Positions 5,683 through 63,841 of a stretch of DNA of 64,000 nucleotides are shown here, in pieces (position 1 is the first letter of the stretch; each line of letters opens with the position of its first letter). Source of the DNA: Haliotis rubra. Its lineage: Eukaryota. Position numbers and translations under genes: made by a program. Location: the NCBI RefSeq assembly GCF_003918875.1, contig NW_025765592.1, positions 310,001 to 374,000 of the forward strand, in the 5' to 3' direction. The notes beneath the pieces were generated by a model. That model did not search any database and had not been told where the DNA came from. It saw nothing but the letters and a program-made list of their open reading frames with translations.

Positions 5683-8136
5683 ATGTGGATAGGAATGAGA
5701 CTTGCATTGGCGACGCTTCTGACGTTGTTGCTGGTGCTGCCTACTGTGAAATCACAGAAAGTGTCAACTTTAAATGGCCCACTTCTAGGACAACAACTGT
5801 CAGTGTTGGGCAAGTCTCTTGACGTATTCTATGGAATCCCATATGCGAAGCCTCCTGTAGGCGATCTACGCTTCAAATACCCTCAGCCTTCAGAGTCATG
5901 GGGACCGGAAGTAAGGGATGCACAAAACCCGACGCCATCTTGCTTCCAACCAATAGGTGCTCATAACACAGATGAGAAGCACAAGCAGATGCCCGATGAT
6001 TACAGTGAAGACTGCCTCCATCTTACAGTGTGGGCGCCATCAGACAATAGTGGCAATCTGGCAGTGATGGTCTGGATTCACGGCGGAGGCTTCTATTTTG
6101 GATCTACAAGACTACCACTGTATGAAGGAAAATACATTGCAGCAGAGAATGGAGTCATCGTTGTTTCAATTAATTACAGATTGGGGCCTTTAGGGTTCAG
6201 CTACCTTGGTCCAGATACCATCCCTGGCAACATGGGCTTGATGGATCAAAGATTAGCCTTACAGTGGGTGAAAGACAATGTTGCCAACTTTGGTGGAGAT
6301 CCAACCCGAGTCACCATATTTGGAGAAAGTGCTGGTGGTGTCTGCGTGGGTCTACACCTGGTGTCACCTCTGTCACGTGACTTGTTTGACAGAGCAATCA
6401 CACAGAGTGGGACCCTCACTTGCTCATGGACATACATGGCGCCCAAAACAGCAAAAGGAAAATTGAAGAGATTTGCTGATCTCCTTGAATGTCCTTCATC
6501 TTCAACTGATACAGAGATATATGACTGCTTGAAGACAGCAGATGCACAAACTATGGCAGACCTTCAGCTTGTTTTGTTAGATGAAGGAACAACATTTCCT
6601 CCAGTTGTGGATGGGTACTTTGTCCCCGATGACCCCAAAAGTCTTCTGTCCACTGGCTCCATCAAGCAGACCAGTGTATTGCATGGTTTTACTAAAGATG
6701 AGACAACACTGTTTTCTGCAATGACATTGAAACGTTCCCTGAGAAACGTGTCCACACTACCTGAATCACTGATTTTAAGTCGTCAAGAATATGATAGTTT
6801 TCTTTCATTTGACATTGTCACTGGAAAGGACATTGGAGAGTCTATTCGTCTATTTTATGAAAGTCAGATACCCCTTCTAAAGGACAAGGACTATTTTGAT
6901 GTCGTAACTCGTGCAACTTCAGACAGGAAATTTAAGTGTCCTCATCTTGAGTTTGACAGATTGTACTCTCCTGCCAACCCTACCTATGTCTACAGTTTTA
7001 ATCGCCGACTGTCAGTTAGTCCAAATCCACAGTGGATGGGAGCACCCCACTGGTACGAGCTTGACTTTGTGTTTGGTTGGGTTCTGGATAAGTCTCTGGG
7101 ATGTACAGAGGAGGAGATGGAACTCAGCAGGACCATCATGACGTACTGGACCAACTTTGCCAAGTCGGGGTGAGTGAGTGAATGAATGAGCGAGTGAAAT
7201 GGTATTATTTTAAATGACATCATGTAAATGTTACTAATCAGGACGATCAATATTTTGTTTCAAATATTCAAGATCTTCTGAAGTTTTCGTATCTATATAC
7301 AGCAATCCGAACGCTCCTGTCCCCATCAAGGTGAACTGGCCAGCCTCTGACAACACTAATCTCTCCTACATGGCCCTTGACGTGGGCAGCAAATTAGCAG
7401 CAGGACACGGGGTAGTCCACCACGAATGTGTTTTCATCAACAGGATTCTACCCATGATTTCTAAAGGTAATAGTATGATGGGATATCATTTTTTAACAGT
7501 TACATGCAATACATGTTTTTATGTTGAAATCACTTAACGGAATACCATAAGTTCATTTCAGTATGGTCCAATCAAGTGGTTCATTCAAATGCTATAATGC
7601 CATTATGTCTGTGCCAACATGTACCCATTAAGAGTTTTCTCAGAATTTTCATGTTAATTTCAAAATGTCACTACTGATATGCCTGGTCCTTACAGTTTGA
7701 TCGTAGAGATAATTTCTAGTGTCTGTGCTTCTCCTACCTGAGACGATATGCTCCTAGAGGCAGTGGGGTAGCCTAGTGGTTTAAACGTTTGCTCGTCATG
7801 CAGAAGACCCAGGTTCAATTGCCCACATGTGTACAATGTGCAGAGTCCATTTCTAGTGTCCCCCGCCATGATATTGCTGGAATCTTGCTAAAAGCGGTGT
7901 AAAACCATACACACTCTCTCCCTCCCTCACCTTTATGCTAAAAGTAAATAACTGTAACAAGATAAGGGCAACAATACCCCAGATGCGTCTTATTGCAACA
8001 TGATCGACTGAAGGCTGCAAATTGTTGAGAATGTACATTGTTTGTTCATGATACAAACGTGCAGCCAGGGAAATCATGAATTTATCCTTGTGTTTCAGAC
8101 CCACCGGAAGGGCAGGAGTATTGCACAAAAGGATGA
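5683..8136 (+). CDS. Secreted cholinesterase-like / type-B carboxylesterase, paralog A (exons 5683-7169, 7303-7466, 8099-8136; 562 aa, intact)
   Basis: Signal peptide; GIPYAKPPVGDLRF; SEDCL; WIHGGGF oxyanion hole; FGESAGG catalytic Ser; GFTKDE Glu; WMGAPHWYE His; WTNFAKSG|NPN; Cys for the three canonical disulfides; in-phase GT-AG introns; AATAAA at 8307-8312. Confidence 0.93.
7758..7928 (+). mobile_element. tRNA-derived SINE in the last intron of gene A
   Basis: A box GTAGCCTAGTGG, B box GGTTCAATTGCCC, body shared with 740-848 and 21131-21265, (CT/CACT) tail. Confidence 0.8.
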
Positions 8137-9400: not shown

Positions 9401-9647
9401 AGTGAATGAGTTCAGTTTTACGCCGCACCTGGCAATATTCCAGCTATATGGCGGCGGTCTGTATATAATCGAGTCTGGACCAGACAATCCAGTGATCAAC
9501 AGCATGGGCATCGATCTGCGCAATTGGGATAAGATGACATGTGTCAACCAAGACAGCGAGCCTGACCACGTGCACCCGGTCCCGTTAGTCGCCCCTAGCG
9601 ACAAGCATGGGTTATTGAAGATCAATTCTAACCCAGACCTTCACGGC
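9401..9647 (-). mobile_element. SINE-like repeat with a ~16-bp target-site duplication
   Basis: TSD tgtctggtgactagtg (9385-9400) / tgtccggtgactagtg (9648-9663). Further copies near 2117, 16072, 33920, 36497, 37570 and their duplicates. Confidence 0.85.
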
Positions 9648-11869: not shown

Positions 11870-12570
11870 TCACTCACTCTAAAACCATTCGCTTCTCAAG
11901 TTAACAGACGTTCCGGACTCACCTGTAACTGAGATTTTGCATGTCACACTAACCAGGTCACGATGCGAGATATCACTGGTGTAACAGCGTCCATGTGTAC
12001 ACCCCAGCGTAGTGTCCACAGCACAACTGTAGAGTCAGGTATAAGGTGAGTGTGTGATGAAAAATGACATTCTGTTTTCCATCAAACACCGTTGACGTAT
12101 ACTGTTGTCGGACTATAGGTAATGACAAGCAGTGTTGTTACTCTAACAGTTTATCTTTGAGGATTTAGATTGAAAATGCTTGCATACAAGTAGGCCTGTA
12201 TATTACCTGCTCTTACCCAGAAACTTTGATGTTGCAAATTGTTTACAAGCGATTGTTCCTGTTAAAGAGGCAGTTGCTCCTTCATGCTGTGTTTTAATTG
12301 CATGGTGTTGTTTGAGTTCGAGTCAACATTAATAATGCATAAATACGTTCAGATGTACCTCTGTTCATTCAGCAATACAAGGGTACCAGTAGGGAATAGA
12401 TTGTCATGTGACTGTAAACCAAGTTCAATATTCCGAAGAATGAAAATTGATGGCAGATTCATCCACTAAAGGGGTAATACGATTATTTACCAATCATTTG
12501 ACAATCTTGACCACTTGGGCGTCTCTTTAAATTCAGTGACGTCATGTCTACCAAGTCACCATATATCGAA
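11870..12570 (+). promoter_or_regulatory. Orphan duplicate of exon 1 plus 5' part of intron 1 upstream of gene B (possible alternative first exon)
   Basis: High similarity to 4611-5280 with an intact AG|GTGAGT donor at 12046. No coding exon follows before the next exon-1 module. Confidence 0.65.
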
Positions 12571-13224: not shown

Positions 13225-14375
13225 TCTGAGATTTTGCAAGTCACGCTAACCAGGTCATATCACTGGTGTAACAGCGTCTGTGTGTACACCCCAGTGCAGA
13301 GTCCACAGTACAACTGTAGAGTCAGGTACAAGGTGAGTGTCTAATGAAAAATGGCATTGTTGTCCTTCAAATACCGTTGACGTTTATATACTTGTTGAAA
13401 TATAGGAAATGGCTAGCAGTGTTGTTACTCCAACAATTTCTCTTTGAGGATTCAGTATGGATATACCTGCACACAAGAAGGACTGTATAATACTTACTCA
13501 TACCCGGAGACATTCATGTTGTTTACAAGCGATTGTTCCTTTTTGAAGTGGCAGTTACACCTTCATGATTCTACTAGTAGACCTGTGTATTACTTACTCT
13601 TACCCGGAGACATTCATGTTGTTTACAAGCGATTGTTCTTTTTAAAGTGGCAGTTACACCTTCATGATTCTTGTCAATTTCATTGTGTAGTTTGTCTAAT
13701 CAATATAAATACTTTCGGATGCGTCTCTGTTCATTCAGAAACACAGGGGTACCGTTAAGGAATAGATTGTAATGTGACTGTGAACCGTATTCAGTTTACC
13801 TAAGAATGAAAATTAATGGCAGATTAATCCACAGACGAGGCCATAAAATTCACCAACCGTTTGACAATCTTGACCGCTGGGTCTCTTTTACATACAATGA
13901 AGTCATGTCTACCACGTCACCATACTTAACTTTCCAAATTGTATGTCTGTGTATTTCCTGTTCCACCATCACCGTTACAGTTCTTCAATGTAATTACAAT
14001 GCCAGTACGAAATATAATGGCAGAGGTGACAACAAAGTCAATGATAAATAATACTCCCACATCAGCAACAGTGCTCAAGCTTCCAAAACAGACTTATACT
14101 AAATATCCGGGGTGAAAAGATGATGTTCACAGAATGCTGGACACCGCTGTCCTCACGTGACAATCTGAACATTGTTTTCCTGCTTTACACAGCCATATTA
14201 CACGTACACAGACATATTGTTCTACTGATTTACACAGCAATATAACACGAACCATCTTGGTTATTAGTGTCACATTTCATGTGTAAAGAAACTGTGATTA
14301 ACTAGGAACATGAACTGAAAAGGATCAAACGTTCAACTGTAAATCGTATCTTAAAATTCAATATGTTCTTTCAGA

Positions 14376-17098
14376 ATGTGGACAGGAATGAGACTTGCAT
14401 TTGCGACGCTTGTTACGTTGTTGCTGGTGTTGCCTACTGTGAAAACAAAGGAAGTGTCAACTCTGAATGGCCCACTTCTAGGACAACGTCTGTCAGTGTT
14501 GGGCAAGTCTCTTGACGTATTCTATGGAATTCCATATGCCAAGCCTCCTGTAGGTGATCTCCGCTTCAAATACCCTCAGCCTTCAGAGTCATGGGGACCG
14601 GAAGTTAGAGATGCACAAAACCCGACGCCATCTTGCTTCCAACCAAAAAATGCTCATGGCACTGATGAAAGTTACAAACAGATGCCCGATGATTACAGTG
14701 AAGACTGCCTTCACCTTACAGTGTGGGCGCCATCAGCCAATGCTGGCAATCTGGCAGTCATGGTCTGGATCCACGGCGGAGCTTTTTATATTGGATCTAC
14801 AAGACTGCCACTGTATGAAGGAAAATACATTGCAGCAGAGAATGACGTCATCGTTGTTTCAATGAATTACAGATTGGGGCCTCTAGGGTTCAGTTACCTT
14901 GGTCCAGATACCATCCCTGGAAATATGGGCTTGGTGGATCAAAGATTAGCCTTACAGTGGGTGAAAGACAATATTGCCAACTTTGGTGGAGATCCAACCC
15001 GCGTGACCATATTTGGAGAAAGTGCTGGTGGTGCAAGTGTAGGTCTACACCTGGCATCACCTTTGTCACGTGACCTGTTCGACAGAGCAATCACACAGAG
15101 TGGGACCCTCCTCTGCCCGTGGGCTTACACTTTTCCCAACACAGCAAAACAGAAACTGAAGAGATTTGCCAATCTCCTTGAATGCCCTTCATCTTCAACT
15201 GATACAGAGATATATGAGTGCTTGAAGACAGCAGATGCACAAACTATGGCAGACCTTCAGCTAGGTTTGTTCGATGAAGGAATTCCATTTCGTCCAGTTG
15301 TGGATGGGAACTTCCTCCCCGATGACCCCAAAACTCTTCTGTCCACTGGCTCCATCAAGCAGACCAGTGTATTGCATGGTTTTACAAAGAACGAGATGAC
15401 TCTGTTTTCTGCACTGACATTGAAGCAGATGAGAAAAGTATCTGCATTACCGGAAACATTGATTTTAAGTCGCACAGAATATGAAAGTCTTAAGTTTAGC
15501 ATTGGAAATGTGGACGGAATCGAAGAACCTCTTCGCCTCTTTTATGAAAGTCAGAAAGCCCCCCTGAAAGAAAAAGACTATTTTGATGTCGTGACTCGAG
15601 CGAGTACGGATAAGGCAATGAAGTGTCCTCATCTTGAGTTTGACAGATTGTACTCTCCTGCCAACCCTACCTACGTGTACAGTTTTAATCACCGACTATC
15701 AGTTAGTCCGTTTCCACAGTGGATAGGAGCAGCCCACTGGTACGAGCTTGACTTTGTGTTTGGTTGGGTCCTGGAAAAGTCTCTGGGATGTACAGAGGAG
15801 GAGATGGAACTCAGCAGAACCATCATGACGTACTGGACCAACTTTGCCAAGTCAGGGTGAGTGAGTGAGTGGTACATATGACTTATTGAGTCAATGATCG
15901 CCCTCAAACTTTTAAGACCTCTTAATCCCGAAAGAACAGCACAAAACACAAAGGAAACAACTTCTATCATTTTCATGTGTACAATGTCCAGAGACCATTT
16001 ATGTTGTCCACTGGCGTTTTCAAAATGTGTCAAAAACCTATTTCACCCTCTCCAATTAACATGATACCAAACCCGTGGAGATCCGGTTTAGCATTGGTCT
16101 TCAGCAACTCATGTTTGTCGTAAGAGGAGACTAACGGGATCGGTTGGTCAGGCACGATAACAAAGTTGAAACATGTCATTGCATACCACTGCATAGCTCC
16201 ATGTTCATGCTATTGATCACTGGATTATCTGGACCAGGTTCGATTAATTACAGATCGCCACCATATAGATGGAATAGTGCAGGGCCTCTTATATTAAACA
16301 ACAAATGAACCAAACAAACAAATAAACAAAACATCCTAGAACTCTTTTATTTACAGGAACCCGAACACTCCTGTCCCCGTCAAGGTGAACTGGCCAGCCT
16401 CTGACAACACTGATCTCTCCTACATGGCTCTTGACGTGGGCAGCAAATTAGCAGCAGGACACGGGGTAGTCCACCACGAATGTGTCTTCATCAACAAGAT
16501 TGTCCCCATGATTTCTAAAGGTAATGTTCATGATGGATAGTTCAATGGGAATGGTCGGGACCGACAGGTATTTCGAGTTATGCATAATATTCGAGACGCC
16601 GGCAGTCGACTCATCGGGATTTGACTGTAGTTGAATGGTTTCAGATGTGAATAGTTTCTCAAGTGATTATGATACTTATGTATACCAATACGTCCATACT
16701 GATCCACGGATACTGATTGGTTCGTGTCAACATGTTCATGCCCATATGTTAATGCTGATACCATCATGTTGATATGTTCGTAATGTTACCTTTAAACGGC
16801 TACGTTCATGCGGACATGTTCCTGCCCATACGTGTAGTCATCTCAGTGTTGAGCCTTGTTTCATGAAAGAAGTTTTACCCCCAACTCACTCAACTTTTCA
16901 CTATAACCATCGCTGGAAGACGTATGAGTTAATACAAAAGGCACCTTTGTTTGTAACCAGATGGCAACAGCCCCTCCCCATGTCACGCCTGGTTTATCGT
17001 TGTGGATATTACACTGGACTGTAGCACGGCAAATAATGAGTCCATTTAATGCTTTTCAGACCCCCCCTGAAGGGCAGGAATACTGCACGAGAGGATGA
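14376..17098 (+). CDS. Cholinesterase-like paralog B (exons 14376-15856, 16357-16520, 17060-17098)
   Basis: 494-aa exon-2 ORF with GGAF, GESAG, GFTKNE and AAHWYE. The last exon has C7 where B' has C6, probably an assembly indel; otherwise the tail is DPPEGQEYCTRG*. Confidence 0.9.
16072..16330 (+). mobile_element. SINE-like repeat in an intron of gene B (duplicate at ~43918-44175)
   Basis: Reverse complement of the 9401-9647 family, with an (AAAC)n tail. Confidence 0.75.
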
Positions 17099-17136
17099 AA
17101 GGACAGCATCACAATAATCAGACCTTGAGGAACATA

Positions 17137-17833: not shown

Positions 17834-18960
17834 CAGCGGGTGGCCATATTATAACGTACAAACACGGCGGACCGATTGTTTACACGGGAATTCAAAGTGT
17901 CATAACTCGTCAAATATAAACAGTCTTACCTCAATATTTTTGTGATGTGTCCCTTGTTCCTTATTATTTTCAACATCCACCTTGGAATCGATGAATATAC
18001 ATTTCTGATGAAATCGAGGGCAATATTTTCCAAGTTGCCCGCACTTCGTGTTCCAAGTAGGCAGCCGACTGAATGTTTCTTCGGCGTCCCTGAAGTCTAT
18101 TCTTCAGGTAGAGCCAACAGTTCTCAATAATATTTGCGTCTAGACTCTGTGCAGGCCGCAACATTCCATTAATGTAATTTTGTCGCTTGTAATCCTGAAC
18201 GACATGGGCCCGATGTACAGGGGCGTTTTCATATTGGAAGATGTACCGGTTTCCCGGCAAATGTCTGGCTATAACGGGCCAAAACATATCATCGAGGATT
18301 TCTGTGTATTTCTGAGCATTTATGTTGCCATTAACAACACAAAAGGTACCAACGCCATGCCAGGTGATACAACCCCACACCATAAATCTGACGCGTGGCT
18401 GTCGTCCCGGACAAAGACATTGCGGGAGGAATTCTTCATCGGGCTGTCTCCAAACAAAAACGCGATTGTTTTCCCCAATGATAATTTTACACTCGTCAGG
18501 GAAGATCACTCGATTCCAGTAATGATTCACTGTACGATATCGTTGCCCCCTTGCCTAGGCCAAACGATTTCTGACATTATAGTCACGAATTCAGATTTTC
18601 TTTCTAACAACACGTCTATGAAATATATTTTCATATAATCGTCTCCTTACAGTCCTCACCGATACACGTGGTAGCCCAATTGTTGTTCAAATTCTCAGTT
18701 ATTCACCCAAAGGTGAAATCCTATTGTGTCTGACCAACCTCAAAAGTTGTCGATTGTCCCAAAGAGTCAGTTCCCTCATACGGCCTGTTCTGAGAGCATT
18801 TTCGTCGATTAAACCGCTTTACCACCGAATATACGCTGCTTCGGGGCATTCCAAAGAATTTTGCAATGTTAGAACATTTTCAATTACTTTTTTACAATTA
18901 ATTTCTTAAGTGACTCCGACAAATTAACCGATTTCCCCATTGTTACCGGAAATAGCTAGA
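17834..18960 (-). mobile_element. Degenerate Tc1-like transposon with DDE transposase remnant (duplicate at ~45679-46805)
   Basis: ORF motifs W..VIF.DE, MVWGCI, FQ.ENAPVH (second catalytic D altered) and PAQSLDANIIENCW. One Tc1-type end, TA|CAGCGGGTGGCCA, at 17834. Frameshifted N-terminus from the ATG at 18940. Confidence 0.88.
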
Positions 18961-19505: not shown

Positions 19506-20337
19506 TCTGCTCGGACAAGTCACTTGGTACATGTGTTATCCAGCAACTCAACTACCGTAGACATTATATACTCAGAGAAGTCAACTGGTGTGTGAACTAT
19601 CTGCTCGGACAAGTCACTTGGTACATGTGTTATCCAGCAACTCAACTACCGTAGACATTATATACTCAGAGAAGTCAACTGGTATGTAAACTATCTGCTC
19701 GGACAAGTCACTTGGTACATGTGTTATCCAGCAAGTCAACTACCGTAGACATTATATACTCAGAGAAGTCAACTGGTATGTAAACTATCTGCTCGGACAA
19801 GTCACTTGGTACATGTGTTATCCAGCAAGTCAACTACCGTAGACATTATATACTCAGAGAAGTCAACTGGTATGTAAACTATCTGCTCGGACAAGTCACT
19901 TGGTACATGTGTTATCCAGCAAGTCAACTACCGTAGACATTATATACTCAGAGAAGTCAACTGGTATGTAAACTATCTGCTCGGACAAGTCACTTGGTAC
20001 TTGTGTTATCCAGCAAGTCAACTACCGTAGACATTATATACTCAGAGAAGTCAACTGGTATGTAAACTATCTGCTCGGACAAGTCACTTGGTACTTGTGT
20101 TATCCAGCAAGTCAACTACCGTAGACATTATATACTCAGAGAAGTCAACTGGTATGTACTTGTGTTATCCAAACTATCTGCTCGGACAAGTCACTTGGTA
20201 CTTGTGTTATCCAGCAAGTCAACTACCGTAGACATTATATACTCAGAGAAGTCAACTGGTATGTAAACTATCTGCTCGGACAAGTCACTTGGTACTTGTG
20301 TTATCAAGCAAGTCAACTACCGTAGACATTATATATT
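19506..20337. repeat. 94-bp minisatellite, ~9 copies
   Basis: Unit tctgctcggacaagtcacttggtac...tggtatgtaaacta starts at 19506, 19600, 19694 and so on. Confidence 0.95.
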
Positions 20338-20749
20338 TAGAGATATTATACATTTAACTGGCATAAACCATTTACTCAGACAAGTCAACAATGGTACATG
20401 CGGTACAGACACAGATTAATCGGGTGGTACATGTTCACTGTGTTTGCCTTTTCTTCATGGATATATGAACTGGCATACCCAATACCTACGCTCACTGATC
20501 ATCTGGTATATTTGTATCTAGTCAGACAGGTCAACTAGTATAAACGCTGTCTTAATGGACTAGTGAACAGCTACATACCTTACTGTGAAACCAACTACAT
20601 CATACATTATTCACTGGCACAAATCAATCGGTACATGTGTAATCTCTTCTGGCAAGTCAACACACCGCCTCCATCAGTAGAGCCTGCTACTACAACATCC
20701 ACAATATCAGCCAAGTCCGCCACTACCTCGATACTGACACCTGTAAACT

Positions 20750-23846: not shown

Positions 23847-24019
23847 NNNNNNNNNNNNNNNNNNNNNNNNNNNNNNNNNNNNNNNNNNNNNNNNNNNNNN
23901 NNNNNNNNNNNNNNNNNNNNNNNNNNNNNNNNNNNNNNNNNNNNNNNNNNNNNNNNNNNNNNNNNNNNNNNNNNNNNNNNNNNNNNNNNNNNNNNNNNNN
24001 NNNNNNNNNNNNNNNNNNN
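23847..24019. other. Run of 173 N (assembly gap or masked sequence) in intron 1 of gene C
   Basis: Ns in the sequence, with the same left flank as the N run at 51011-51173. Confidence 0.99.
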
Positions 24020-27031: not shown

Positions 27032-27280
27032 CAACATCTTAATAATCGGACCTGAGTATAAAATATAAATACACGATTAAAATTCAGGTTTAATGTTGTT
27101 TTGATGTTTATTAGTTATATGGCTTGCTGCCATGTAGATCTATCAATGACGTCATTGAATAAATATTTGGCCTATGTTCTGTTGTTCAGTATTTAATCTA
27201 TTTAAGCATGCTGTGTCCTGCAAGGCCAAGAACCTAACAAACACACACATCACGTTGCAATTCACAATATATACTGAACA

Positions 27281-28050
27281 GGAACCCAACGAACCCAAGG
27301 AACCCAAGGAACCCAAGATACCCAAGGAACCCAAGAAATCAAAGGAACCCAAGGAACCCAAGATACCCAAGGAACCCAAGAAATCAAAGGAACCCAAGGA
27401 ACCCAAGATACCCAAGGAACCCAAGATACCCAAGGAACCCAAGGTACAATAGGAACCCAAAGTACCCAAGGTACCCAAGGAACCCAAGGAACCCAAGATA
27501 CCCAAGGAACCCAAAGTACCCAAGGAACCCAAGGAACCCAAGGTACAATAGGAACCCAAAGTACCCAAGGAACCCAAGGAACCCAAGGAACCCAAGATAC
27601 CCAAGATACCCAAGGTACCCAAGGAACCCAAGATAACCAAGGAACCCAAGGTACAATAGGAACCCAAAGTACCCAAGGTACCCAAGGAACCCAAGGAACC
27701 CAAGGAACCCAAGATAACCAAGGAACCCAAGGTACAATAGGAACCCAAAGTACCCAAGGTACCCAAGGAACCCAAGGAACCCAAGGAACCCAAGGAACCC
27801 AAGATAACCAAGGAACCCAAGGTACAATAGGAACCCAAGATAACCAGGGAACCTAAGGTACAATAGGAACCCAAAGTACCCAAGGAACCCAAGGAACCCA
27901 AGGAACCCAAGATAACCAAGGAACCCAAGGTACCCAAGGAACCCAAGATAACCAAGGAACCCAAGGTACAATAGGAACCCAAAGTACCCAAGGAACCCAA
28001 AGTACCCAAGGTACCCAAGGAACCCAAGGAACCCAAGGAACACAAGGAAC
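27281..28050. repeat. 9-bp (GGAACCCAA)n minisatellite with variant units
   Basis: ~85 units with variants GATACCCAA, AGTACCCAA, GGTACAATA and GATAACCAA. Confidence 0.95.
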
Positions 28051-47350: not shown

Positions 47351-48640
47351 TCTGCTCGGACAAGTCACTTGGTACATGTGTTATCCAGCAAGTCAACTAC
47401 CGTAGACATTATATACTCAGAGAAGTCAACTGGTGTGTGAACTATCTGCTCGGACAAGTCACTTGGTACTTGTGTTATCCAGCAAGTCAACTACCGTAGA
47501 CATTATATACTCAGAGAAGTCAACTGGTATGTAAACTATCTGCTCGGACAAGTCACTTGGTACATGTGTTATCCAGCAAGTCAACTACCGTAGACATTAT
47601 GTACTCAGAGAAGTCAACTGGTATGTAAACTATCTGCTCGGACAAGTCACTTGGTACTTGTGTTATCCAGCAAGTCAACTACCGTAGACATTATACACTC
47701 AGAGAAGTCAACTGGTATGTAAACTATCTGCTCGGACAAGTCACTTGGTACATGTGTTATCCAGCAAGTCAACTACCGTAGACATTATATACTCAGAGAA
47801 GTCAACTGGTATGTAAACTATCTGCTCGGACAAGTCACTTGGTACTTGTGTTATCCAGCAAGTCAACTACCGTAGACATTATATACTCAGAGAAGTCAAC
47901 TGGTATGTAAACTATCTGCTCGGACAAGTCACTTGGTACATGTGTTATCCAGCAAGTCAACTACCGTAGACATTATATACTCAGAGAAGTCAACTGGTAT
48001 GTAAACTATCTGCTCGGACAAGTCACTTGGTACTTGTGTTATCAAGCAAGTCAACTACCGTAGACATTATATACTCAGAGAAGTCAACTGGTATGTAAAC
48101 TATCTGCTCGGACAAGTCACTTGGTACTTGTGTTATCCAGCAACTCAACTACCGTAGACATTATATACTCAGAGAAGTCAACTGGTATGTAAACTATCTG
48201 CTCGGACAAGTCACTTGGTACTTGTGTTATCCAGCAAGTCAACTACCGTAGACATTATATACTCAGAGAAGTCAACTGGTATGTAAACTATCTGCTCGGA
48301 CAAGTCACTTGGTACTTGTGTTATCAAGCAAGTCAACTACCGTAGACATTATATACTCAGAGAAGTCAACTGGTATGTAAACTGTCTGCTCGGACAAGTC
48401 ACTTGGTACTTGTGTTATCCAGCAAGTCAACTACCGTAGACATTATATACTCAGAGAAGTCAACTGGTATGTAAACTATCTGCTCGGACAAGTCACTTGG
48501 TACTTGTGTTATCCAGCAAGTCAACTACCGTAGACATTATATACTCAGAGAAGTCAACTGGTATGTAAACTATCTGCTCGGACAAGTCACTTGGTACTTG
48601 TGTTATCCAGCAAGTCAACTACCGTAGACATTATATATTT
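47351..48640. repeat. 94-bp minisatellite, ~14 copies
   Basis: Units start from 47351 to 48573 at 94-bp spacing. Confidence 0.95.
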
Positions 48641-51010
48641 AGAGATATTATACATTTAACTGGCATAAACCATTTACTCAGACAAGTCAACAATGGTACA
48701 TGCGGTACAGACACAGATTAATCGGGTGGTACATGTTCACTGTGTTTGCCTTTTCTTCATGGATATATGAACTGGCATACCCAATACCTACGCTCACTGA
48801 TCATCTGGTATATTTGTATCTAGTCAGACAGGTCAACTAGTATAAACGCTGTCTTAATGGACTAGTGAACAGCTACATACCTTACTGTGAAACCAACTAC
48901 ATCATACATTATTCACTGGCACAAATCAATCGGTACATGTGTAATCTCTTCTGGCAAGTCAACACACCGCCTCCATCAGTAGAGCCTGCTACTACAACAT
49001 CCACAATATCAGCCAAGTCCGCCACTACCTCGATACTGACACCTGTAAACTCCTAATGGACTGTCTTGTCACGTGTATACTCGACTACTGTAAGTCACGA
49101 TATGCCAACCTCTCCACTAGATCACTCCAGAAACTAATAAAGAATAATGCAAAGAATCACCACAATTCACACCAGTGCTACAGTCTCTACGCTGGCTCCC
49201 CATCTCTGCAAGAATTACCTTCAAAATCCTCATTCTGACTCATGACTGCCTCTACAACGATAACTTTCCCGACTATCTCAAACATCTCCTCTCCGATCCT
49301 CCTCTGACTCTCTCCTCACCCAACACAGATCTCCAAACCAACTGTCTGACCGAGTCTTCTCCTTTGCCAGCCCTGAACTGTGGAACTCTCTTCCAAAGAA
49401 AATCAGGAACACTTCATTGAAAGAAACTTTAAATCTTTGCTTAAGACCCATCTGTTCACTGCTGCCTTTCTGTAAAGTTATATGAACTATTTCCTTCCCC
49501 AATATTGTCACAGCGCCGCTGGGCATCACTACGATGGATATTAGGCGTTATATAAATACATTATTATTATTTGTCAATAACGGCATGAAAAAACATATGG
49601 TCAACATTCTTTATAGATATTGTGACGCCTTCTCTACTGAACAGCCACCAATCACAATCACGCATATATACCCATCAATAACGGCATGGAATAAACACAA
49701 GGTCCGCATTCTGTTCTTCCCTGTTGCATGTTAAGTCTATTCTAGCATATCAATGGATATGTAATGTCCACTGAATCGTATGCCAGTTGCGTAGATTGAT
49801 GCTCATGCCGTTGATCACTGGATTGCCTGGTCCAGAAAGGTCCATTGGGTGGTAGTACTCTGTACTACCTTCAAGAACTCTAAATATAGCGCACGTCTAT
49901 ATACAGTCAATGTCAGTCTAACCGCTGACTCTCTGCTCTGCAGTGCTATACCCTTGGAACATTGTTACACAATGGACATCACTGCCACTCAACACCATGA
50001 AGCCAAAGCTTCAGGTCCTTTTCTACAACTAGCATATGGACCGAAAGGGAACTCCAAGTGATGTAATCCAAAATATGAACAACAATAGTTGGCCATAGCA
50101 TAATATTCAATACAAATAAGGTATGTTCAATAAACAGGTGTCACAGATATTGATAGTTTATATCATTAATAAGATCAGTAGCTTAAACAGTGTAAGATGT
50201 GGTCAAAGCGTCCTGCTGTCCATCAGGACATTTTGCATGAAAAGTCAAAATAATTAATATTACGTGAATCAGCCTCTATTCTCAAGGCAATCCCTGATTC
50301 GACGGTGTACTCATCACCAAACGTCCAGTGTTAACTTGGTTCAAGCCATCCAAATTCTTCCTGCATGGCAGCGCCATGTTCGTTAAGAATGGCCGTCGGT
50401 TGATATCCAAGACATGGATAGAGTGCTGATCATTGTAAGGTGGTTATGCTCTCCTACGAGCCATTTACGATGGTCATTGAGGTATGCTCTCCTGGAGGTA
50501 CTCTGTAACAATACGAGCGATTTGCGCTCATTTTGTTATGTCATCCTGGAGGTAAGCACAAACTTACGCTTTTTGTAATAATATATGTCACGCAAACCAG
50601 GTGATCTTATCAGATAACACCCGTTTAGCAGCATGTTCAGGTGTACACCCTACAGCAGTGTTCAGAGTACAGCTGTAGAGTCAGGTACAAGGTGAGTGGG
50701 TGTTGAAATATTACATTCTGTTTTAACATTGACGTATACCATTGTCCGAATTATAGCTAATGACTGACAGTGATATTCCTCTTGGCCAAAGCAGTTTATC
50801 GTTTGAGGATTGAGGCTCTATATAAATACAAACAAATAGGAAAGTCTGCCACCTACCTCTTCCACATGCGACTCTTGCTCAGACGTACTACAGTCAAGAT
50901 TACACCATTCAATGCCTCAGGGGCACATTGATTCATTGCCATAGCCATGTATCAGGGTTTGATTTGGGTCATTACAATGTGAGAAATACTGTAAATAACA
51001 GGCGCAAATA

Positions 51011-51761: not shown

Positions 51762-54368
51762 ATGGCATCAGCAATGAAAATTGCGCTTGTTACGCTGGTG
51801 GCGGGCTTGCATATTGCAAAAACACAGAAAGTGTCAACTCAAGATGGCCCACTTCTTGGACAACGTCTGTCACTGTTGGGCAAGTCCCTTGACGTATTCT
51901 ATGGAATCCCATATGCCAAGCCTCCTGTAGGTGATCTCCGCTTCAAGCACCCCCAACCTTCAGAGTCATGGGGACCGGATGTTAGAGATGCACAGAAACC
52001 AACGCCATCTTGCATTCAACCTGAAGATGTATTCACATCTCCAGAGGTTTACAGACAGGTCCCGGATGATACCAGTGAAGACTGCCTTCATCTTACAGTG
52101 TGGGCGCCATCAGACAATGCTGGCAATCTGGCAGTGATGGTCTGGATCTACGGGGGAGGTTTCTATTTTGGATCTTCACGAATGCCACTATATGAAGGAA
52201 AATATCTTGCAGCAGAGAATGACATCATCGTTGTTTCAATGAATTACAGACTGGGGCCATTAGGGTTCAGCTATCTGGGGCCAGATACCATCCCTGGAAA
52301 CATGGGCTTGATGGATCAACGACTTGCCTTACAGTGGGTGAAAGACAACATTGCCAACTTTGGTGGAGATCCATCTCGGGTGACAATATTTGGAGAAAGT
52401 GCTGGTGGTGTCAGCGTAGGACACCACCTGGTGTCACCATTGTCACGTGACTTATTTCAGAGAGCCATCATGCAGAGCGGATCCCCGAATTTCCCATGGG
52501 CTTACACTTTTCCACACACAGCAAAACGGAAATTGAAGCAGTTTGCTGATCTCCTTGGATGCCCGTCATCTTCAACTGATGCAGAGATCTATGACTGTGT
52601 AAAGAAAGCAGATGCTCAAACTATGGCAGACCTTCAGCTTAGTGATTTGTTAGATGAAGGACTTGCATTTGGTCCAGTTGTGGATGGGCACTTCCTCCCC
52701 AATGACCCCCAAACTCTTCTGACCACCGGTTCCAACAAGCAGGCTAGTGTAATGCATGGTTTTACTAAAGACGAGTTAACATTGTCTATAGCAGTTGCTT
52801 TGAAGCAGATGAGAAACATATCTTCATTACCGGAAACATTGATTTTAAGCCGCACAGAGTATGAAAGTTTTCTTTCCTATGATAGAATAGGTGGTAAAGG
52901 ATTTGAAGAGCCTCTTCGCCTGTTTTATGAAAGTCAAACATCCCGGTCTTAGGGACACTCACTATTTGGATGTCATGACTCGCATGATGTCAGATAGGGA
53001 TTTCAAGTGTCCTCATCTTGAGTTTGACAGATTGTACTCTCCTGCCAACCCTACCTACGTGTACAGTTTTAATCACCGACTATCAGTTAGTCCGTATCCA
53101 AAGTGGATAGGAGCAACCCATTGGTATGATGTTGAGTTTGTGTTTGGTTTGGTCCTGGAAAAGTCTCTGGGATGTACAGAGGAGGAGATGGAACTCAGCA
53201 GGACCATCATGACCTATTGGACCAACTTTGCCAAGTCAGGGTGAGTAATAGAGTGCAATTGAGAGTGTGAGTGAGTGGCGAGTGATAGTGTGAGTTGGAC
53301 AGAGTAAGAGAAAAATCGAGTCATGGAATTACGCAGGTTAATAGTCTCGGAACAGATGAGCGAGTGAGTGAGAGATCCCTCACTCGGTCTTATATTGTTC
53401 ATTTACATGTTCAAACAATTTCACCTCAGATAAAAATTGATTCCCATTTCCAAACAGATCGATTTGTATTGTTTTCTTGAAGCTTTCATATCTTTATACA
53501 GCAACCCTAACACTCCTGTCCCCGTCAAGGTGAACTGGCCAACCTCTGACAACACTGATCTCTCCTACATGGCTCTTGACGTGGGCAGCAACTTATCAGC
53601 GGGACACGGGGTAGTCCACCACGAATGTGTCTTCATCAACAGGATTCTACCCATGATTTCTAAAGGTAATGTGTTGTTATGATAGGATGTCGCTTGTTGC
53701 AATTACACATATTTGAATGTAGCTGTGTCTAAAACACTCAAAAACAGATCGATATGTCAAAGGAAGCATAGTTTTGTCTTTCCATTCCAAGTCAACTCTC
53801 TTGGCTTCCATACGATTTTCCAAACGCCAGTAAAATATGTGCCTCCTCCTTGGTCATGGTTTGACAATGACTTCTTAATGCGAATGTCGCTCAGAAAATA
53901 TTATAAATCTATGATGGATTTCAACCTCAGATAGACTGTACCAAAACCGATCCAAAACACAATCATGGAAAATTCGTATTACCCCACATCAATAATGGCT
54001 GTGGTTTTAACCAAAGGCAATTACAGACACAAAGAATACCCAGCGTATCAGGTGCTATACAGTGACGTAATGTATATGGAAAACAACCATAGAACATGTG
54101 TAACGAGGAAGACTTCAAATATTGCCAATTGCGTTCAGGAGTTCTCCCAGATTTAATTATTTGCTTTTCTTACGCGTATCCAGCTCCCTGATTTCATAAA
54201 GCTGTGAATGTCTGGAACCCACATCACGTTTTGTTTGCCAACCAGTTAAGAACACGCCCACTCGTGTCTGTCTTGCTGTAGTGTTGCTGGAACAGCCAGG
54301 GAAGTTATGAACCATATTGTTGTGTTTCAGACCCACCGGAAGGGCAGGACTACTGCACCAAAGGATGA
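51762..54368 (+). CDS. Cholinesterase-like paralog C' (exons 51762-53240, 53502-53665, 54331-54368); single +1 frameshift at ~52944
   Basis: Nearly identical to C; tcccggtctt replaces tcccctctt. Confidence 0.75.
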
Positions 54369-54617
54369 CAACATCTTAATAATCGGACCTGAGTATAAAA
54401 TATAAATACATCATTAAAATTCAGGTTTAATGTTGTTTTGATGTTTATTAGTTATATGGCTTGCTGCCATGTAGATCTGTCAATGACGTCATTGAATAAA
54501 TATTTGGCTTATGTTCTGTTGTTCAGTATTTAATCTATTTAAGCATGCTGTGTCCTGCAAGGCCAAGAACCTAACAAACACACACATAACGTTGCAATTC
54601 ACAATATATACTGAACA

Positions 54618-55931
54618 GGAACCCAAGGAACCCAAGGAATCCAAGGAACCCAAGGAACCCAAGGAACCCAAGGAATCTAAGGAATCTAAGGAACCCAAGG
54701 AACCCAAGGAATCCAAGGAACCCAAGGAACCCAAGGAATCTAAGGAACCCAAGGAACCCAAGGAACCCAAGGAACCCAAGGAACCCAAGGAACCCAAGGA
54801 ACCCAAGGAACCCAAGGAACCCAAAGTACCCAAGGAACCCAAGGTACCCAAGGAACCCAAGGAACCCAAGGAAAAGATACCCAAGGAACCCAAAGGTACC
54901 CAAGGAACCCAAAGGAACCTAAGGAACCCAAGGAACCTAAGGAACCTAAGGAACCCAAGGTACCCAAGAACCCAAGGAACCCAAGGAACCCAAAGTACCC
55001 AAGGAACCCAAAGGAACCCAAGGAACCCAAAGAACCCAAGGAACCCAAGGAACCCAAGGAACCTAAGGGAATCTAAGGAACCCAAAGTACCCAAGGAACC
55101 CAGATAGGAACCCAAGGAACCCAAGGAACCCAAGGAACCTAAGGAACCCAAAGTACCTAAGGAACCAAAGGAACCTAAGGAACCCAAGGAACCCAAGGAA
55201 CCCAAGAACCCAAGGAACCCAAGGAACCTAAGGAACCCAAGGAACCCAAGGAACCCAAGATACCAAAGGAACCCAAGGTACCCAAGGAACCCAAAAGCAA
55301 CCTAAGGAACCCAAGAACCCAAGGAACCCCAAGGAACCTAAGGAACCCAAGGAACCCAAGGAACCCCTAAGATACCCAAGGAACCCAGTACCCCAAGGAA
55401 CCCAAGGAACCCAAGGAACCCAAGGAACCAATAAGGAACCCAAGAACCCACGGAACCCAAATACCTAAGGAACCTAAGATACCCAAAGGAACCCAAGGAA
55501 CCTAAGGAACCTAAGGTACCTAAGGAACCCAAAGTACCCAAGGAACCCAAGGAACCCAAGGAACCCAAGGAACCCAAAGTACCCAAGGAACCCAAGGAAC
55601 CCAAGGAACCCAAGGAACCCAAGAACCCAAGGAACCCAAGGAACCCAAGGAACCCAAGGTACCCAAGGAACCCAAGGAACCCAAGATACCCAAGGAACCC
55701 AAAGGAACCCAAGGAACCCAAGGAACCCAAGGAACCTAAGGAACCCAAGGAACCCAAGATACCCAAGGAACCCAAGGAACCCAAGGAACCCAAGGTACCC
55801 AAGGAACCCAAGGAACCCAAGGAACCCAAGGAACCCAAGGAACCCAAGGAACCCAAAGTACCCAAGGAACCCAAGGAACCCAAGGTACCCAAGGAACCCA
55901 AGGTACCCAAGGAACCCAAGGAACCCAAGGA
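54618..55931. repeat. 9-bp (GGAACCCAA)n minisatellite, second-block version
   Basis: Longer than the first-block array and with different variant units. Confidence 0.95.
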
Positions 55932-58900
55932 ACACATTGTGACGACTGCCAGCATGGTGATGCCTACTACCATTCTTACCTCGTTCATAACCAGCTGCCA
56001 AAAGGAAGTTGAAGTCAAAGAACCAATAGACATCCACATGACGTGACAATGCACGATATTCTGAAAATCTGAGAAACACATTTCAAAATAGAGATTTCCT
56101 CTATTGTCAGATTGTCAGTGATGCTTTCTAACATTCGTCCATCTTTCCTGGTGATCCCCTTAAGGGTTGGTGGACAGTCAACGTCAAGACGTGTATGATG
56201 TTACCTTTGAGGTGAGGTGAGGTGAACTTGTGTTTAACGTCGTACTTGAGCATATTTCGCTCATATGACGACGTGCATGCGTGTGTATGTGTATGTGCGG
56301 CTGCTTGTACTAGCCCAGACTGAAGCTGGTTTTATAGTGCTAGCCCACTGAGATACCATGCCGCAGTGAAGCATGAATACCCCACTCAGACACATTATAC
56401 TGACTCCGAGCCGACCAGTCCTTGTTGTACCCATTAATGCCGAGCGCCAGGCAGGGACCAACAAGTACCATATTTTAACGTCTTTTGGTATGACGCGGTC
56501 GGGATCGAACCCGCGACCTTCCGCTCTCCGGGCGGACGCTCTAATCACTACACCATGGAGGCGGTCGATATTACCTTTTTGATGCAGATAAAGCACTTAA
56601 TGGGAGATCTACACACTGACCTCTGGTGTCAACTTAGCAACAACTTCTCCTTTGAATGTTTGTAGTTTCATTATTTAGCAACACAAAAAGGGGGGTGGGG
56701 GGGGTAAAATGTCGTATTTCAATGCTTCAGGAATCTCCCTGGTTGTGAACATCATAAAGTGAGTGTGAGGTTTGTAATAGAGGCTTTATTATACACCTGC
56801 AGCACTCTGGCCTTCCCTCCTGTGATGTAAATACACAAATACAAAACAATCAAACCTCACTCACTCACCCACCCATCCATCCACCTGCTCACATCACTCA
56901 CTCACTCATTGCCTCACCCACTCACTCACTGACCCACACATCCATCCACCGGCTCACTCACTCACTCACTCATTGCTTCACCCTCTCACTCCCTGACCCA
57001 CACATCCATCCACCGGCTCACTCACTCACTCACTCACTCACTCAAACCCACTCACTCACTGTTAAGTGTGAAAGAGGCTGTTATGGAATGCCTGTATTGT
57101 GAACTGTATTGCGATATGCTGGGAGGTCAAGGTCAGAATGGTCAGTCAAATATATTTCTCTTTTGATTTGGATTAAGCTATACAAATGATAACAAAACCT
57201 CTGCTGGTTTCTCAATATACCCTGTACATACTGAAAACTTGTTTCAAAACCTCTTGTTTGAAAAGTGTATTTCAGTATACCACTGACTCAAACCCACTCA
57301 CTCACTCACTCACTCACTCACTCAAACTCACTCACTCACTTACTCACTCACTCATTCCATGGCCAAAGTCCCCCTGTGTCTACTTTACACATGTCGTAAT
57401 CAGGCTGGCGGTCTCGCTGGATGACTTGCAGATTCTCCACCTGAAGCTTCGCCCAACAACCAAGTTCATATTAACTCACCTGCCCCCGATTTAGGAGTCA
57501 GTGCAAAACTATAACTGTACATGTCACGGAAATCAGGTCATCGTGTGAGATATCACCGGTGAACAGCGCCTCAACGTGTACACACTTTTTGCACTATCCA
57601 GAGAACACTCATCAAGTCAGGTGCAAGATAAGTGTGTCACGAAAATAACATTCTGTTGATCACGAAATACCACTGAAGCATACAATAGCCCGAAATATAG
57701 ACAATGCTGTTTTGGTGGTGTGACTACAGACGACAAGAGTTTATCTTTGAGAGCAGAGGCTGCATTAGTCTGTCTCACAGTCCCTGAACCACATTATTTT
57801 CCCCAATGCTTAGCCCTCCCTGCAATGCTGAAGCCCTAAATGAAGCAAGTCAAGATTTCCTCAGGTTCAGCCTGAATCTCTGGTCTCCCTGGGGCTCCTT
57901 TTCAATTTAAATGGGTTTATTTGCTACTATCAAAGTTATATGTATTCAGGGACTAAACGTTAGTCTAAGGCTGCATATGCTTTCATACAAATACGCCGTT
58001 CAATACCCTTCACTAACCGAGGGATCTGAATAAAAAATAAAATAATAATAATAATAATAATAATAAAAATAAATAAAATAAATCCAAATAGGATTGCCAG
58101 TCACCAACATTCATGCTGTTTACACACGTGTCTATAATACTACTGCAGTGTCCTCCCTGTGTGATAAAACAACGACATTTCAGTTGTACAGGAAATAGTA
58201 CTGCAGTGTCTTCCATGTGTGATAAAACAACGACATTCAGTTGTACAGGAAATACTACTAAAGCATAAGGTTGTCCGACATGAATAACGGATGACAGTGT
58301 TTCTACTCTGGACTATAACAGCTGATCCGAATATGGTTGCATACAAATAGGCCAGTAAACAGCCAACTCTCGTTCAGAGAACTACATATTCCCGCGAATT
58401 TACTTCAATTGTCTGTGTTCGTTACCTGGCCGAACGTTCCTCTGAAATGGGTACCAGTAAGGACAAGATGGTCGGATGTACATTAGTGCATTCAGTAATG
58501 AATGGGTACCAGTAAGGACAAGATGGTCGGATGTACATTAGTGCATTCAGTAATGAATGGGTACCAGTAAGGACAAGATGGTCGGATGTACATTAGTGCA
58601 TTCAGTAATGAATAGGTACCAGTAAGGACAAGATGGTCGGATGTACATTAGTGCAGTCAGTAATGAATGGATACCAGTAAGGAGGGCGATGTGACTGTGA
58701 ACGTTATCGCGCCTCACTGGCAGTATGAACTGCAGAGGAAGCCCAGGAATGGAAATAGAGGGCGCGTCCATTAACCGGGTTCTTAACTTGCCTTAGGGTT
58801 TAAATTTGGGTAATTTAAATGTGAAAATTGTTGACGATAATACATGTGTATGCATTATTTGTAGCAAATATTTCAGGCGTAATGCCTGACAAACAAATCC

Positions 58901-61198: not shown

Positions 61199-63841
61199 AT
61201 GTGGACAGGAATGAAACTTGCATTTGCGACGCTTGTGACGTTGTTGCTTGAGTTGCATGTTGCAAAAACACAGAAAGTGTCAACACTAAATGGCCTCTTC
61301 TAGGACAACGTCTGTCAGTGTTGGGCAAGTCCCTTGACGTATTCTATGGAATCCCATATGCCAAGCCTCCTGTAGGTGATCTCCGCTTCAAGCACCCTCA
61401 ACCTTCAGAGTCATGGGGACCGGAAGTTAGAGATGCACAAAAACCGACGTCATCTTGCTTCCAACCAAAAAATGCTCATGGCAGTGATGAAAGTTACAAA
61501 CAGATGCCCGATGATTACAGTGAAGACTGCCTTCATCTTACAGTGTGGGCGCCATCAGACAATGCTGGCAATCTGGCAGTGATGGTGTGGATCCACGGTG
61601 GAGGTTTTTATATTGGATCTACAAGACTGCCACTGTATGAAGGAAAATACATTGCAGCAGAGAATGGAGTCATCGTTGTTTCAATGAATTACAGATTGGG
61701 GCCTTTAGGGTTCAGCTACCTTGGTCGAGATACCATCCCTGGCAACATGGGCTTGATGGATCAAAGATTAGCCTTACAGTGGGTGAAAGACAATATTGCC
61801 AACTTTGGTGGAGATCCAACCCGAGTCACCATATTTGGAGAAAGTGCTGGTGGTGCAAGTGTAGGTCTACACCTGGCATCACCGCTGTCACGTGACCTGT
61901 TTGACAGAGCAATAATGCAGAGTGGGACTCTCATCTCCCTATTTGCAGACCGCATGCCCAAAACAGCAATACGGACACTGAAGAGACTTGCTGATCACCT
62001 TGAGTGCCCTTCATCTTCAACTGATGCAGAGATATATGAGTGCTTGAAGACAGTAGATGCACAAACTATGGCAGACCTTCAGCTAGGTTTGTTCGGTGAA
62101 GGAATTGCATTTCGTCCAGTTGTGGATGGGTACTTCCTCCCCGATGACCCCAAAATTCTTCTGTCCACTGGCTCCATCAAGCAGACCAGTGTATTGCATG
62201 GTTTTACTAAAGATGAGACAGCACTGTTTTCTGCAATGATATTGAAGCAGATGAGAAACGTATCAACATTACCTGAATCACTCATTTTAAGTCGTCAAGA
62301 ATATGATAATTTTATTTCATTTGACATGCTCACTGGAACAGACATTGAAGAGCCTATTCGTCTGTTTTATGAAAGTCAGATACCCCTTCTAAAGGACACG
62401 GACTATTTAGAGGTCGTAACTCGTGCAACTTCAGACAGGGGATTTAAGTGTCCTCATCTTGAGTTTGACAGATTATATTCTCCTGCTAACCCTACCTATG
62501 TCTACAGCTTTAATCATCGACTGTCAATTAGTCCGTATCCAAAGTGAATGGGAGCACCCCACTGGTACGAGCTTGACTTTGTTTTTGGTTGGGTTCTGGA
62601 AAAGTCTCTGGGATGTACAGAGGAGGAGATGGAACTCAGCAGGACCATCATGACGTACTGGACCAACTTTGCCAAGTCCGGGTGAGTGAGTGACTGAATG
62701 AGCGAATGAAATATACATTCAATGATAAAAACGTTTTACTAAGTCACCCTTCTTTAAATTATACCACAGATAAATGTGTATAAAATAATCATGATTTCTT
62801 GATGTTTTCTTATGTGTATCCAGCGATCCAAACGCTCCTGTCCCCGTCAAGGTGAACTGGCCAGCCTCTGACAACACTGATCTCTCCTACATGGCCCCTT
62901 GACGTGGGCAGCAAATTAGCAGCAGGACATGGGGTAGTCCACCATGAATGTGTCTTCATCAACAGGATTCTACCCATGATTTCTAAAGGTAAATCTATAA
63001 TGGTACATTGGTTCCTGGTACACATAAATGAATATTTTTAGAAGTGACTTGGATACTTCTCTTGTTTGGTTGAATATTTACGATGATAAGTAATGTTGTT
63101 GATTTTCTTTAATTATCACGAATGGTTGGAACAGACTCGTTTATATTGGTAGTTGTTGATTCTCAAGTTAAAACAAAATAGTTAACAGGGAATCAGTCTG
63201 TACGAGAATTGTGTGTGAAATTGAGAAACAAAAAAGATGTAATTAAACATTGTATTTCTTAAATTGTAAAGTCGCAAATCAATACAAAGACTTCACTTTG
63301 GGAGAGTGAGTGAGTGAGTTTAGTTTTACGCCCACACTCTGTAATATATGGCGGCGGCCAGTAAATAATCAAGTCTGGACCAGACAATCCAGTGATGAGC
63401 ATCGATCTACACAACTGGGATACGATGACACACTTTGGCAGAACAAAATAGAGTGGCAGTACAAAGTCAGAGGTATAATATAACAGCAGTGATTGTAGAA
63501 ATAAAGACAATGATGGTCATAGTGACCTGTCAGCAATAGAAATTCAACTTGGAAGAAAGGGCCAGGCAGAGAGTAAACAAAGTTTAAAGTGACCACTCAC
63601 AATACTGGTCTTCTTGTGACTCGAGATGTGATGTGAGATGAAAGGCAATAGCTAAGTAAGATTCACTGACTGAATCTACAGGTACAAAGTATACCTTGAA
63701 ACATTGTTGCACAACGTTTAACACCGCCTCATGGCAGCATGTTCATGCCAATATGTTCCATAGTGCAGCTATGGAAATTATGAATTCATGGTTGTGTTTC
63801 AGACCCACCGGAGGGGGCAGGAGTACTGCACAAGAGGATGA
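61199..63841 (+). pseudogene. Cholinesterase-like paralog D' pseudogene (exons 61199-62681, 62824-62988, 63803-63841)
   Basis: Shared early frameshift (TAG at 61301-61303), a private TGG>TGA nonsense change at 62545-62547 just before the catalytic His, and a mutated exon-1 donor at 57628. Confidence 0.88.

Follow-up and report, generated by a model that had tools for sequence, protein, structure and literature searches.

The gene array and its transcripts

A 64,000-nt stretch of the genome of the blacklip abalone Haliotis rubra (hereafter the window) contains part of a tandem array, with seven cholinesterase-like gene copies, designated A to G, which probably belong to a Haliotis-specific group of secreted esterases derived from cholinesterases. 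The copies were located by tblastn with the first long open reading frame (ORF) as query, and it was verified that the seven main exons, each of about 1.49 kb, all lie on the plus strand and start at positions 5683, 14376, 24500, 34393, 42216, 51762 and 61199 (A to G). On the 3' side of every main exon, the copy's own 164-nt exon 2 was found, followed by a short exon 3 that encodes 12 residues and ends in C-T-[KR]-G-stop. As assembled, the main exon is open only in A, B and C, over about 495 codons. The seven copies are arranged as follows.

5683-8136, plus strand: gene A, exons 5683-7169, 7303-7466 and 8099-8136; intact, 562 amino acids, motif APHWYE
14376-17098, plus strand: gene B, exons 14376-15856, 16357-16520 and 17060-17098; main exon intact, motif AAHWYE
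24500-27031, plus strand: gene C, exons 24500-25977, 26239-26402 and 26994-27031; intact, 559 amino acids, motif ATHWYD
34393-37028, plus strand: copy D, exon 1 34393-35875 with three frameshifts; exons 36018-36181 and 36991-37028, both open
42216-44943, plus strand: copy E, exon 1 42216-43701 with four insertions; exons 44203-44366 and 44906-44943
51762-54368, plus strand: copy F, exon 1 51762-53240 with a 1-nt insertion at 52945; exons 53502-53665 and about 54331-54368
61199-63841, plus strand: copy G, exon 1 61199-62681; exon 2 about 62819-62988, frameshifted; exon 3 63803-63841

For gene A, a splice solution with GT-AG introns leads to the protein end DPPEGQEYCTKG, and the gene is 99% identical to the H. 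rubra model P0001 of the National Center for Biotechnology Information (NCBI). Exon 1 of gene B shares 100% identity with the NCBI model P0004 ("cholinesterase 1-like isoform X2"), as do exons 1 and 2 of gene C with P0021 (isoform X3), the own exon 3 of C having been located through its DNA pattern and a splice solution. Among the remaining copies, D has A and B as its nearest paralogs (about 90%), exon 1 of E is 99.7% identical to that of B, exon 1 of F is 99.3% identical to that of C, and G is 98.6% identical to D; in the main exon at the DNA level, A shares 82-87% identity with the other copies. Counted by paralog type, the seven copies reduce to four: A, B, C and D. The sequence itself shows an N-terminus that resembles a signal peptide, together with a C-terminal Cys, and the end of the main exon aligns, in the HMMER alignment, with residue 478 of butyrylcholinesterase (BChE), which we take to be the end of BChE exon 2.

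Two of the NCBI models combine exons of different copies, since P0004 joins B exon 1 to D exons 2-3 and P0021 joins C exons 1-2 to D exon 3. These isoforms are probably read-through or merged gene models, since each gene has its own 3' exons. They had suggested a UGT1A-like layout, in which variable first exons are spliced to common 3' exons, and this layout was rejected because exons 2 and 3 are present separately in each copy and because an RNA contig joins the exons of B itself. In this contig, assembled from run X22, position 15853 is joined to 16361-16520 and then to 17062, which corresponds to the spliced exons 1-2-3 of B.

Regarding coverage, runs X22 and X13 extend over exons only and runs X24 and X20 over everything. 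Of the words sampled from A, 0.80-0.82 are present in each of four tiny runs (31-51 million letters), a share that is plausible only for abundant RNA, and B is represented in other small runs of the same study. That this study (P5) is the genome project with liver and gonad RNA (PMC6774278) is only a guess. Pairwise comparisons among A, B and C resulted in ratios of nonsynonymous to synonymous substitution rates (dN/dS) of 0.30-0.34, with dS values of 0.29-0.47, and about a dozen intact orthologous or paralogous models were found in each of H. rubra and H. asinina.

Catalytic core and gorge positions

Exon 1 alone matches the Pfam COesterase family of type-B carboxylesterases with the alpha/beta-hydrolase fold (PF00135), with E-values of 1.5e-135 to 5.6e-141, and the match covers positions 2-472 of the 515 in the profile. 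For P0004, the AlphaFold2 model reached a predicted local distance difference test score (pLDDT) of 93.2 and a predicted template modelling score (pTM) of 0.92, and its top Foldseek matches were Torpedo acetylcholinesterase (AChE) and human BChE, with template modelling (TM) scores of 0.87-0.92 and root mean square deviations of 2.1-2.7 Å. Since P0004 carries D exons 2-3, the last 66 residues of this model derive from a paralog that is about 90% identical, which leaves the active site unaffected.

Three sequence features that an earlier note on this DNA had described were found again when all copies were inspected. Firstly, the omega loop, which comprises 23 residues between the first Cys pair (25 with both Cys), lacks Trp in all seven copies; it is uninterrupted in six of them and is the same, albeit frameshifted, in E. 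Secondly, the residue that follows the catalytic His is Trp in every copy, within the motif H-W-Y-[ED], which takes the form APHWYE in A, D and G, AAHWYE in B and E, and ATHWYD in C and F. Thirdly, the aromatic residues after the catalytic Glu are replaced, the sequence being ETTLF, EMTLF, ELTLS or ETALF across the copies. Additionally, the motif FGESAGG is present in all seven.

HMMER alignments against Torpedo AChE and a human BChE variant placed the new Trp opposite Torpedo G441 and revealed two shortened loops. The omega loop is 3 residues shorter than in either enzyme and leaves nothing aligned with W84, and the acyl loop is 4 residues shorter and leaves nothing aligned with F288 or F290. 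Compared with the solved vertebrate enzymes (1P0I for BChE; Torpedo 1EA5 and 2W6C for AChE), the abalone proteins thus share the fold, about 38-42% identity, the catalytic triad, the oxyanion hole, E199 and the three disulfides; they differ in the shorter and Trp-less omega loop, in the replacement of W432, F330, Y334 and W279, in the shorter acyl loop, in the Trp at position 441 and in having no T peptide. The corresponding tetramerisation peptide domain (PF08674) was recorded for no member of the clade defined by the Trp after the catalytic His (the H-W clade), though it was recorded for vertebrate matches, and the short C-terminal exon does not form an H (GPI) peptide either. Neither a transmembrane nor a hydrophobic segment was detected in the approximately 65 residues after exon 1, and no extra domain was found. 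The disulfide residues C87, C111, C270, C282 and C417 are invariant in the alignment, and the exon 2 partner (HHECVF) is present in every copy.

Conservation was counted over 25 members of the H-W clade, with residues numbered as in Torpedo AChE. It was verified that S200, E327, H440, G118, A201, E199 and Y130 are invariant (25/25) and that W233 is retained in 24 of the 25, while position 119 of the oxyanion hole is occupied by G, A or S. The choline pocket, by comparison, is extensively substituted: W432 is replaced by Y, F or N, F330 mostly by L, Y334 by M, V or L, and W279 by L. The loop position that is likely equivalent to W84 holds Tyr, His or Gln, with Tyr or His in most members. This difference between core and gorge is also evident in the mean entropy, which amounts to 1.31 bits over 16 gorge-lining positions, against 0.56 bits over all 517 domain positions and 0.14 bits over the catalytic ones, and none of 20000 random sets of 16 positions reached 1.31 bits. 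Position 441 itself ranks 54th of 517 in variability.

A Trp at this position is rare outside the genus. None of the non-Haliotis proteins among the top 120 matches has H-W, and among 182 His-bearing domains, drawn from the 150 best representatives at 50% identity, the residue after the catalytic His was G in 93, A in 39, S and T in 12 each, C in 8, F in 7 and W in 1, so that H-W is not common in the family. The single exception belongs to Macrostomum lignano (P0121, UniRef A0A1I8G704), which shares with the abalone copies the H-W pair, in the form HWGD; it is a partial domain within a fused prediction of 3380 residues, has another motif context and is not close kin. Outside the Haliotis expansion (proteins P0047-P0264), the loop Trp was present in 91 of 128 domains with Gly441 (71%) versus 25 of 87 with other residues (29%), so that 62 of these 87 combine a non-Gly residue with a Trp-less loop, all these counts being uncorrected for kinship. 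This association suggests that position 441 and the omega-loop Trp may be structurally coupled through a packing link.

History of the two tryptophan sites and competing readings

A careful maximum-likelihood tree was rooted with vertebrate and amphioxus cholinesterases, and character states were taken from the alignment. The H-W clade, supported at 100/100, comprises 30 rows, namely A, B and C together with 27 database proteins from Haliotis. It is nested in a clade of 38 rows, whose remaining members bear Tyr or Phe at the loop position that precedes the second Cys by 11 residues and have the catalytic His followed by Ser, Thr or Gly. This larger clade is in turn nested in a Haliotis expansion of 46 rows, in which the basal clade of 8 rows keeps the loop Trp (GMPWR) in 7 members together with H-S or H-T. 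Sister paralogs that lack both Trp residues therefore occur, the triad being intact in most of them. Seen as a whole, the sister Haliotis clades (P0031-P0046) resemble the H-W clade in belonging to the same expansion, in their shortened loop of 24-25 residues and in a mostly non-Gly residue after the catalytic His; they differ from it in that none has H-W, the basal one combining a loop Trp with H-S or H-T and the nearer ones a loop Tyr or Phe with H-S, H-T or H-G. In two proteins of a sister lineage, P0037 and P0041 (H. cracherodii and H. rubra), the catalytic Ser and the preceding Glu are lost (GQGTGA), and these are likely non-catalytic cholinesterase-like proteins.

The distribution of states on the tree indicates that the loop Trp was probably substituted by Tyr or Phe rather than simply deleted, and that this substitution preceded the appearance of Trp at 441. 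On this tree the latter arose once, on the stem of one Haliotis clade, from Ser or Thr and not from Gly. Once present, the Trp gave way to S, T, G, A or M on at least four occasions within the clade, and the tree needs at least five changes between W and non-W. Some of these replacements are common to apparent orthologues from H. rubra and H. asinina, namely P0007 and P0013 as one pair and P0016 and P0026 as another.

Outside the 46-row expansion fall the canonical Haliotis enzymes, whose loop has 28 residues and which carry W84 and HGYE. They are represented by the AchE of H. discus hannai (PMC9189711) and by P0052 of H. cracherodii, which share with the array the genus, the Pfam family and secretion; unlike the array, they have a loop Trp, W432 and HGYE, and they are only about 39% identical to A. 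The H. discus hannai AchE was reported to be most highly expressed in the cerebral ganglion and to have a conserved choline site (PMC9189711). All relatives with at least 44% identity to the array proteins belong to Haliotis.

Taken together, these data favour, with a probability of about 0.7, the reading that the array encodes Haliotis-specific, cholinesterase-derived secreted esterases in which the core was kept, the acetylcholine gorge was dismantled and the pocket was diversified, and which are probably not specialised for acetylcholine. The earlier note had argued for a catalytically equipped, expanded subfamily with a rebuilt pocket, and this part of its interpretation is borne out by the invariance of the triad, the oxyanion hole and E199, by the dN/dS values, by the spliced B transcript and by the gorge entropy; its suggestion of a different specificity is likewise supported, while the idea of a compensating migration of the Trp is not supported, the order of changes on the tree arguing against it.

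According to the mechanism proposed here, a Haliotis-only clade would have grown by tandem duplication from a cholinesterase-like ancestor. Purifying selection would keep the Ser-Glu-His triad, the oxyanion hole, E199 and the three disulfides in a protein of about 560 amino acids, and the residues that line the pocket vary between paralogs, the Trp beside the catalytic His being one such change, kept by most but not all members. The products may be soluble, possibly disulfide-linked, non-cholinergic esterases with diversified substrates, such as dietary or xenobiotic esters, in which the Trp at 441 would make the alcohol-binding pocket narrower or give it a new lining. The canonical genes elsewhere in the genome would then supply the neural acetylcholinesterase.

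Four observations weigh against this reading of the array as non-cholinergic esterases. Aromatic residues are still found in the pocket, namely the new Trp, Y442, F331, Y121, Y130, W233 and the loop Tyr or His; a dN/dS of about 0.3 indicates only moderate constraint; four of the seven copies (D to G) are not open as assembled; and the restriction to Haliotis may stem from the small number of vetigastropod genomes in the databases.

A second, rather unlikely reading is that the Trp forms the aromatic wall of the alcohol or choline pocket, the choline-binding Trp having been relocated in nature to the His loop from the omega loop. Some members would then truly hydrolyse choline esters and respond to inhibitors in an unusual way, and the S, T, G, A or M found at this position in other members would act as specificity switches.

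An equally doubtful possibility is that the array encodes true cholinesterases with a moved choline-binding Trp, in which the Trp beside the catalytic His takes over the cation-pi role. The earlier note had gone in this direction by proposing a Gly-to-Trp swap that might compensate for the lost W86 of human AChE, a proposal that the tree does not support: the two changes lie on different branches, the ancestral residue was Ser or Thr and not Gly, there are sister clades with neither Trp, and the variable position 441 lost its Trp repeatedly after gaining it. In favour of such a relocation, human G448, which corresponds to position 441, is listed in the AChE anionic subsite together with W86 (PMC9921523) and that the position lies within 9 Å of the hydroxyl oxygen of Ser203 (PMC4395452). 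The association of Gly441 with the loop Trp, the rarity of H-W elsewhere and the retention of E199, Y130 and Y442 point the same way. Against it, other residues stand in place of W432, F330 and Y334, the acyl-pocket residues F288 and F290 have no aligned counterpart, and a Tyr or His still occupies the loop position likely equivalent to W84.

Somewhat less probable still is that the proteins are mainly binding proteins, acting either as secreted stoichiometric scavengers of natural esterase inhibitors or toxins, or in adhesion and signalling. Scavenger roles of expanded esterase families are known from BChE and insect esterases, and a secreted, expanded family with variable pockets would suit such a role, as would the existence of the related Haliotis paralogs P0037 and P0041 without a catalytic Ser. 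In non-catalytic adhesion proteins, one would not expect all 25 members examined to keep the triad, the oxyanion hole and E199 without change, and unlike neuroligin-, gliotactin- and neurotactin-type proteins the abalone copies keep the triad and have neither a transmembrane segment nor an extra domain. The scavenger version is only partly distinguishable from the preferred reading of catalytic esterases, because a covalent scavenger still needs the triad.

As for known systems, these genes are already present in NCBI as "cholinesterase-like" models and are not a new kind of system, lineage-specific esterase expansions being common. Tandem expansions of secreted type-B esterases with a kept triad and divergent pockets are known for the cholinesterase-like proteins of amphioxus, the insect alpha-esterases and the juvenile hormone esterases. 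The amphioxus proteins P0084, P0094 and P0095 resemble the abalone copies in their short, Trp-less loops; the other invertebrate expansions differ in being independent, and none of those sampled has Trp after the catalytic His. Literature searches on Haliotis or abalone cholinesterase-like genes found no paper on the family.

If enzymology agrees, the array would represent a natural experiment in which a cholinesterase scaffold was turned into esterases of other specificity, with a frozen core set against about 15 varying gorge positions, one of them bearing a Trp almost never seen there in the family. The association of Gly441 with the omega-loop Trp would offer cholinesterase engineers a testable structural rule. 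For abalone biology, the genes are candidate detoxifying or digestive esterases, whose products could confound the "cholinesterase activity" biomarkers used in ecotoxicology.

Duplicated unit, assembly quality and other elements

A blastn self-comparison of the window revealed that B-C-D and E-F-G are two copies of one 27-kb three-gene unit, which match in long blocks at 98.3-98.8% identity, and two runs of N interrupt the sequence at equivalent places.

12561-37187, no strand assigned: first copy of the unit (B, C, D)
40236-64000, no strand assigned: second copy of the unit (E, F, G), ended by the window edge
23847-24019, no strand assigned: assembly gap (N run), 481 nt upstream of the C start codon
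51011-51173, no strand assigned: assembly gap (N run), 589 nt upstream of the F start codon, the equivalent place in the second unit

The junction between the units (37188-40235) lies inside gap-free sequence. The divergence of 1.2-1.7% between them is close to the published heterozygosity of H. rubra, 1.27-1.44% (PMC6774278), and therefore fits a genuine duplication of recent date and the retention of a second haplotype alike; contig depth, in turn, does not equal copy number. The published assembly was Nanopore-based, with limited polishing, RNA-seq scaffolding and purging of haplotigs (PMC6774278). Both gaps fall outside every coding exon, so that the reading frame across them is not an issue, and the promoter and 5' regions of C and F, and nothing else, may be incomplete as a result. 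The RNA-seq scaffolding (PMC6774278) may be the origin of the joins at these gaps.

The clearest conflict between the assembly and the reads concerns exon 3 of gene B, where a run of seven C at 17061-17067 leads to a premature stop directly after DPP, 9 residues early. The X22 RNA contig and the X24 DNA contigs have one C fewer at 17061, and copy E has 6 C there; with one C fewer, the C-terminus DPPEGQEYCTRG is restored in B. The 7-C run thus appears to be a plain error of the reference sequence at a single-base run.

In copy E, all four insertions are lengthenings of single-base runs (A6 to A7, T5 to T6, C4 to C5 and C6 to C8), and a 1-nt insertion at 42485 breaks the omega loop. Where the DNA contigs of run X24 are aligned with B, three of the sites that correspond to the four insertions show no extra bases and the fourth is uncovered, which weakly suggests that the insertions in E are assembly errors. 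The DNA contigs of run X20, which has another organism label, are missing one base at 14645 and at 15559, within the single-base runs that are longer in E; such places are prone to indels, through biology or sequencing.

Copies D and G have in common a 1-nt deletion at codon 32, which leaves the mature part without an in-frame start or signal peptide. Private to D are G-run indels at 34806 and 35635; in G, a TGG codon is changed to TGA at 62545 and the exon 3 G-run is one base longer than in D. Because most of the lesions in D to G are length changes of single-base runs, the assembly is Nanopore-based, the reads contradict it at B and the X24 contigs lack the E-type insertions, most of the frameshifts in D to G are possibly artefactual.

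These lesions, together with a unit divergence near the heterozygosity and an RNA-scaffolded, haplotig-purged assembly that is contradicted by reads, might suggest that the array consists mostly of decaying pseudogenes or misassembled copies whose motifs have no functional meaning, which is very improbable given that A, B and C are open with a dN/dS near 0.3, that B-type RNA is spliced, that about a dozen intact models are found in each of two species and that the unit junction is free of gaps.

Other elements were noted between and around the genes. ORFs that match the DDE_3 transposase domain (E about 1e-11) at 17970-18530 and 45776-46375, both on the minus strand, are transposon remnants that lie within the duplicated unit, downstream of B and E. 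A 9-nt/18-nt minisatellite, AGGAACCCA, occupies 27280-28050 and 54617-55933, downstream of C and F, and is longer in the second unit; minus-strand ORFs over it read as Gly-X-Y and match Pfam Collagen with E-values of 2e-13 and 3e-18, which is probably an artefact of the repeat rather than a collagen gene. The first 30 or so residues of P0001, a low-quality model, are matched at 84-92% by stretches at 4692-4787, 11963-12046, 13259-13333, 40957-41031 and 41100-41174, upstream of A, B and E, for which an exon further upstream or a repeated element may be the explanation. Finally, three kinds of tandem arrays were observed: a 57-nt unit in 21 copies at 30255-31466, a 94-nt unit in 8.8 copies at 19506-20343 in the first unit and 13.8 copies at 47351-48645 in the second, and a 20-nt unit in 40 copies at 38839-39641, in the spacer between the two units.

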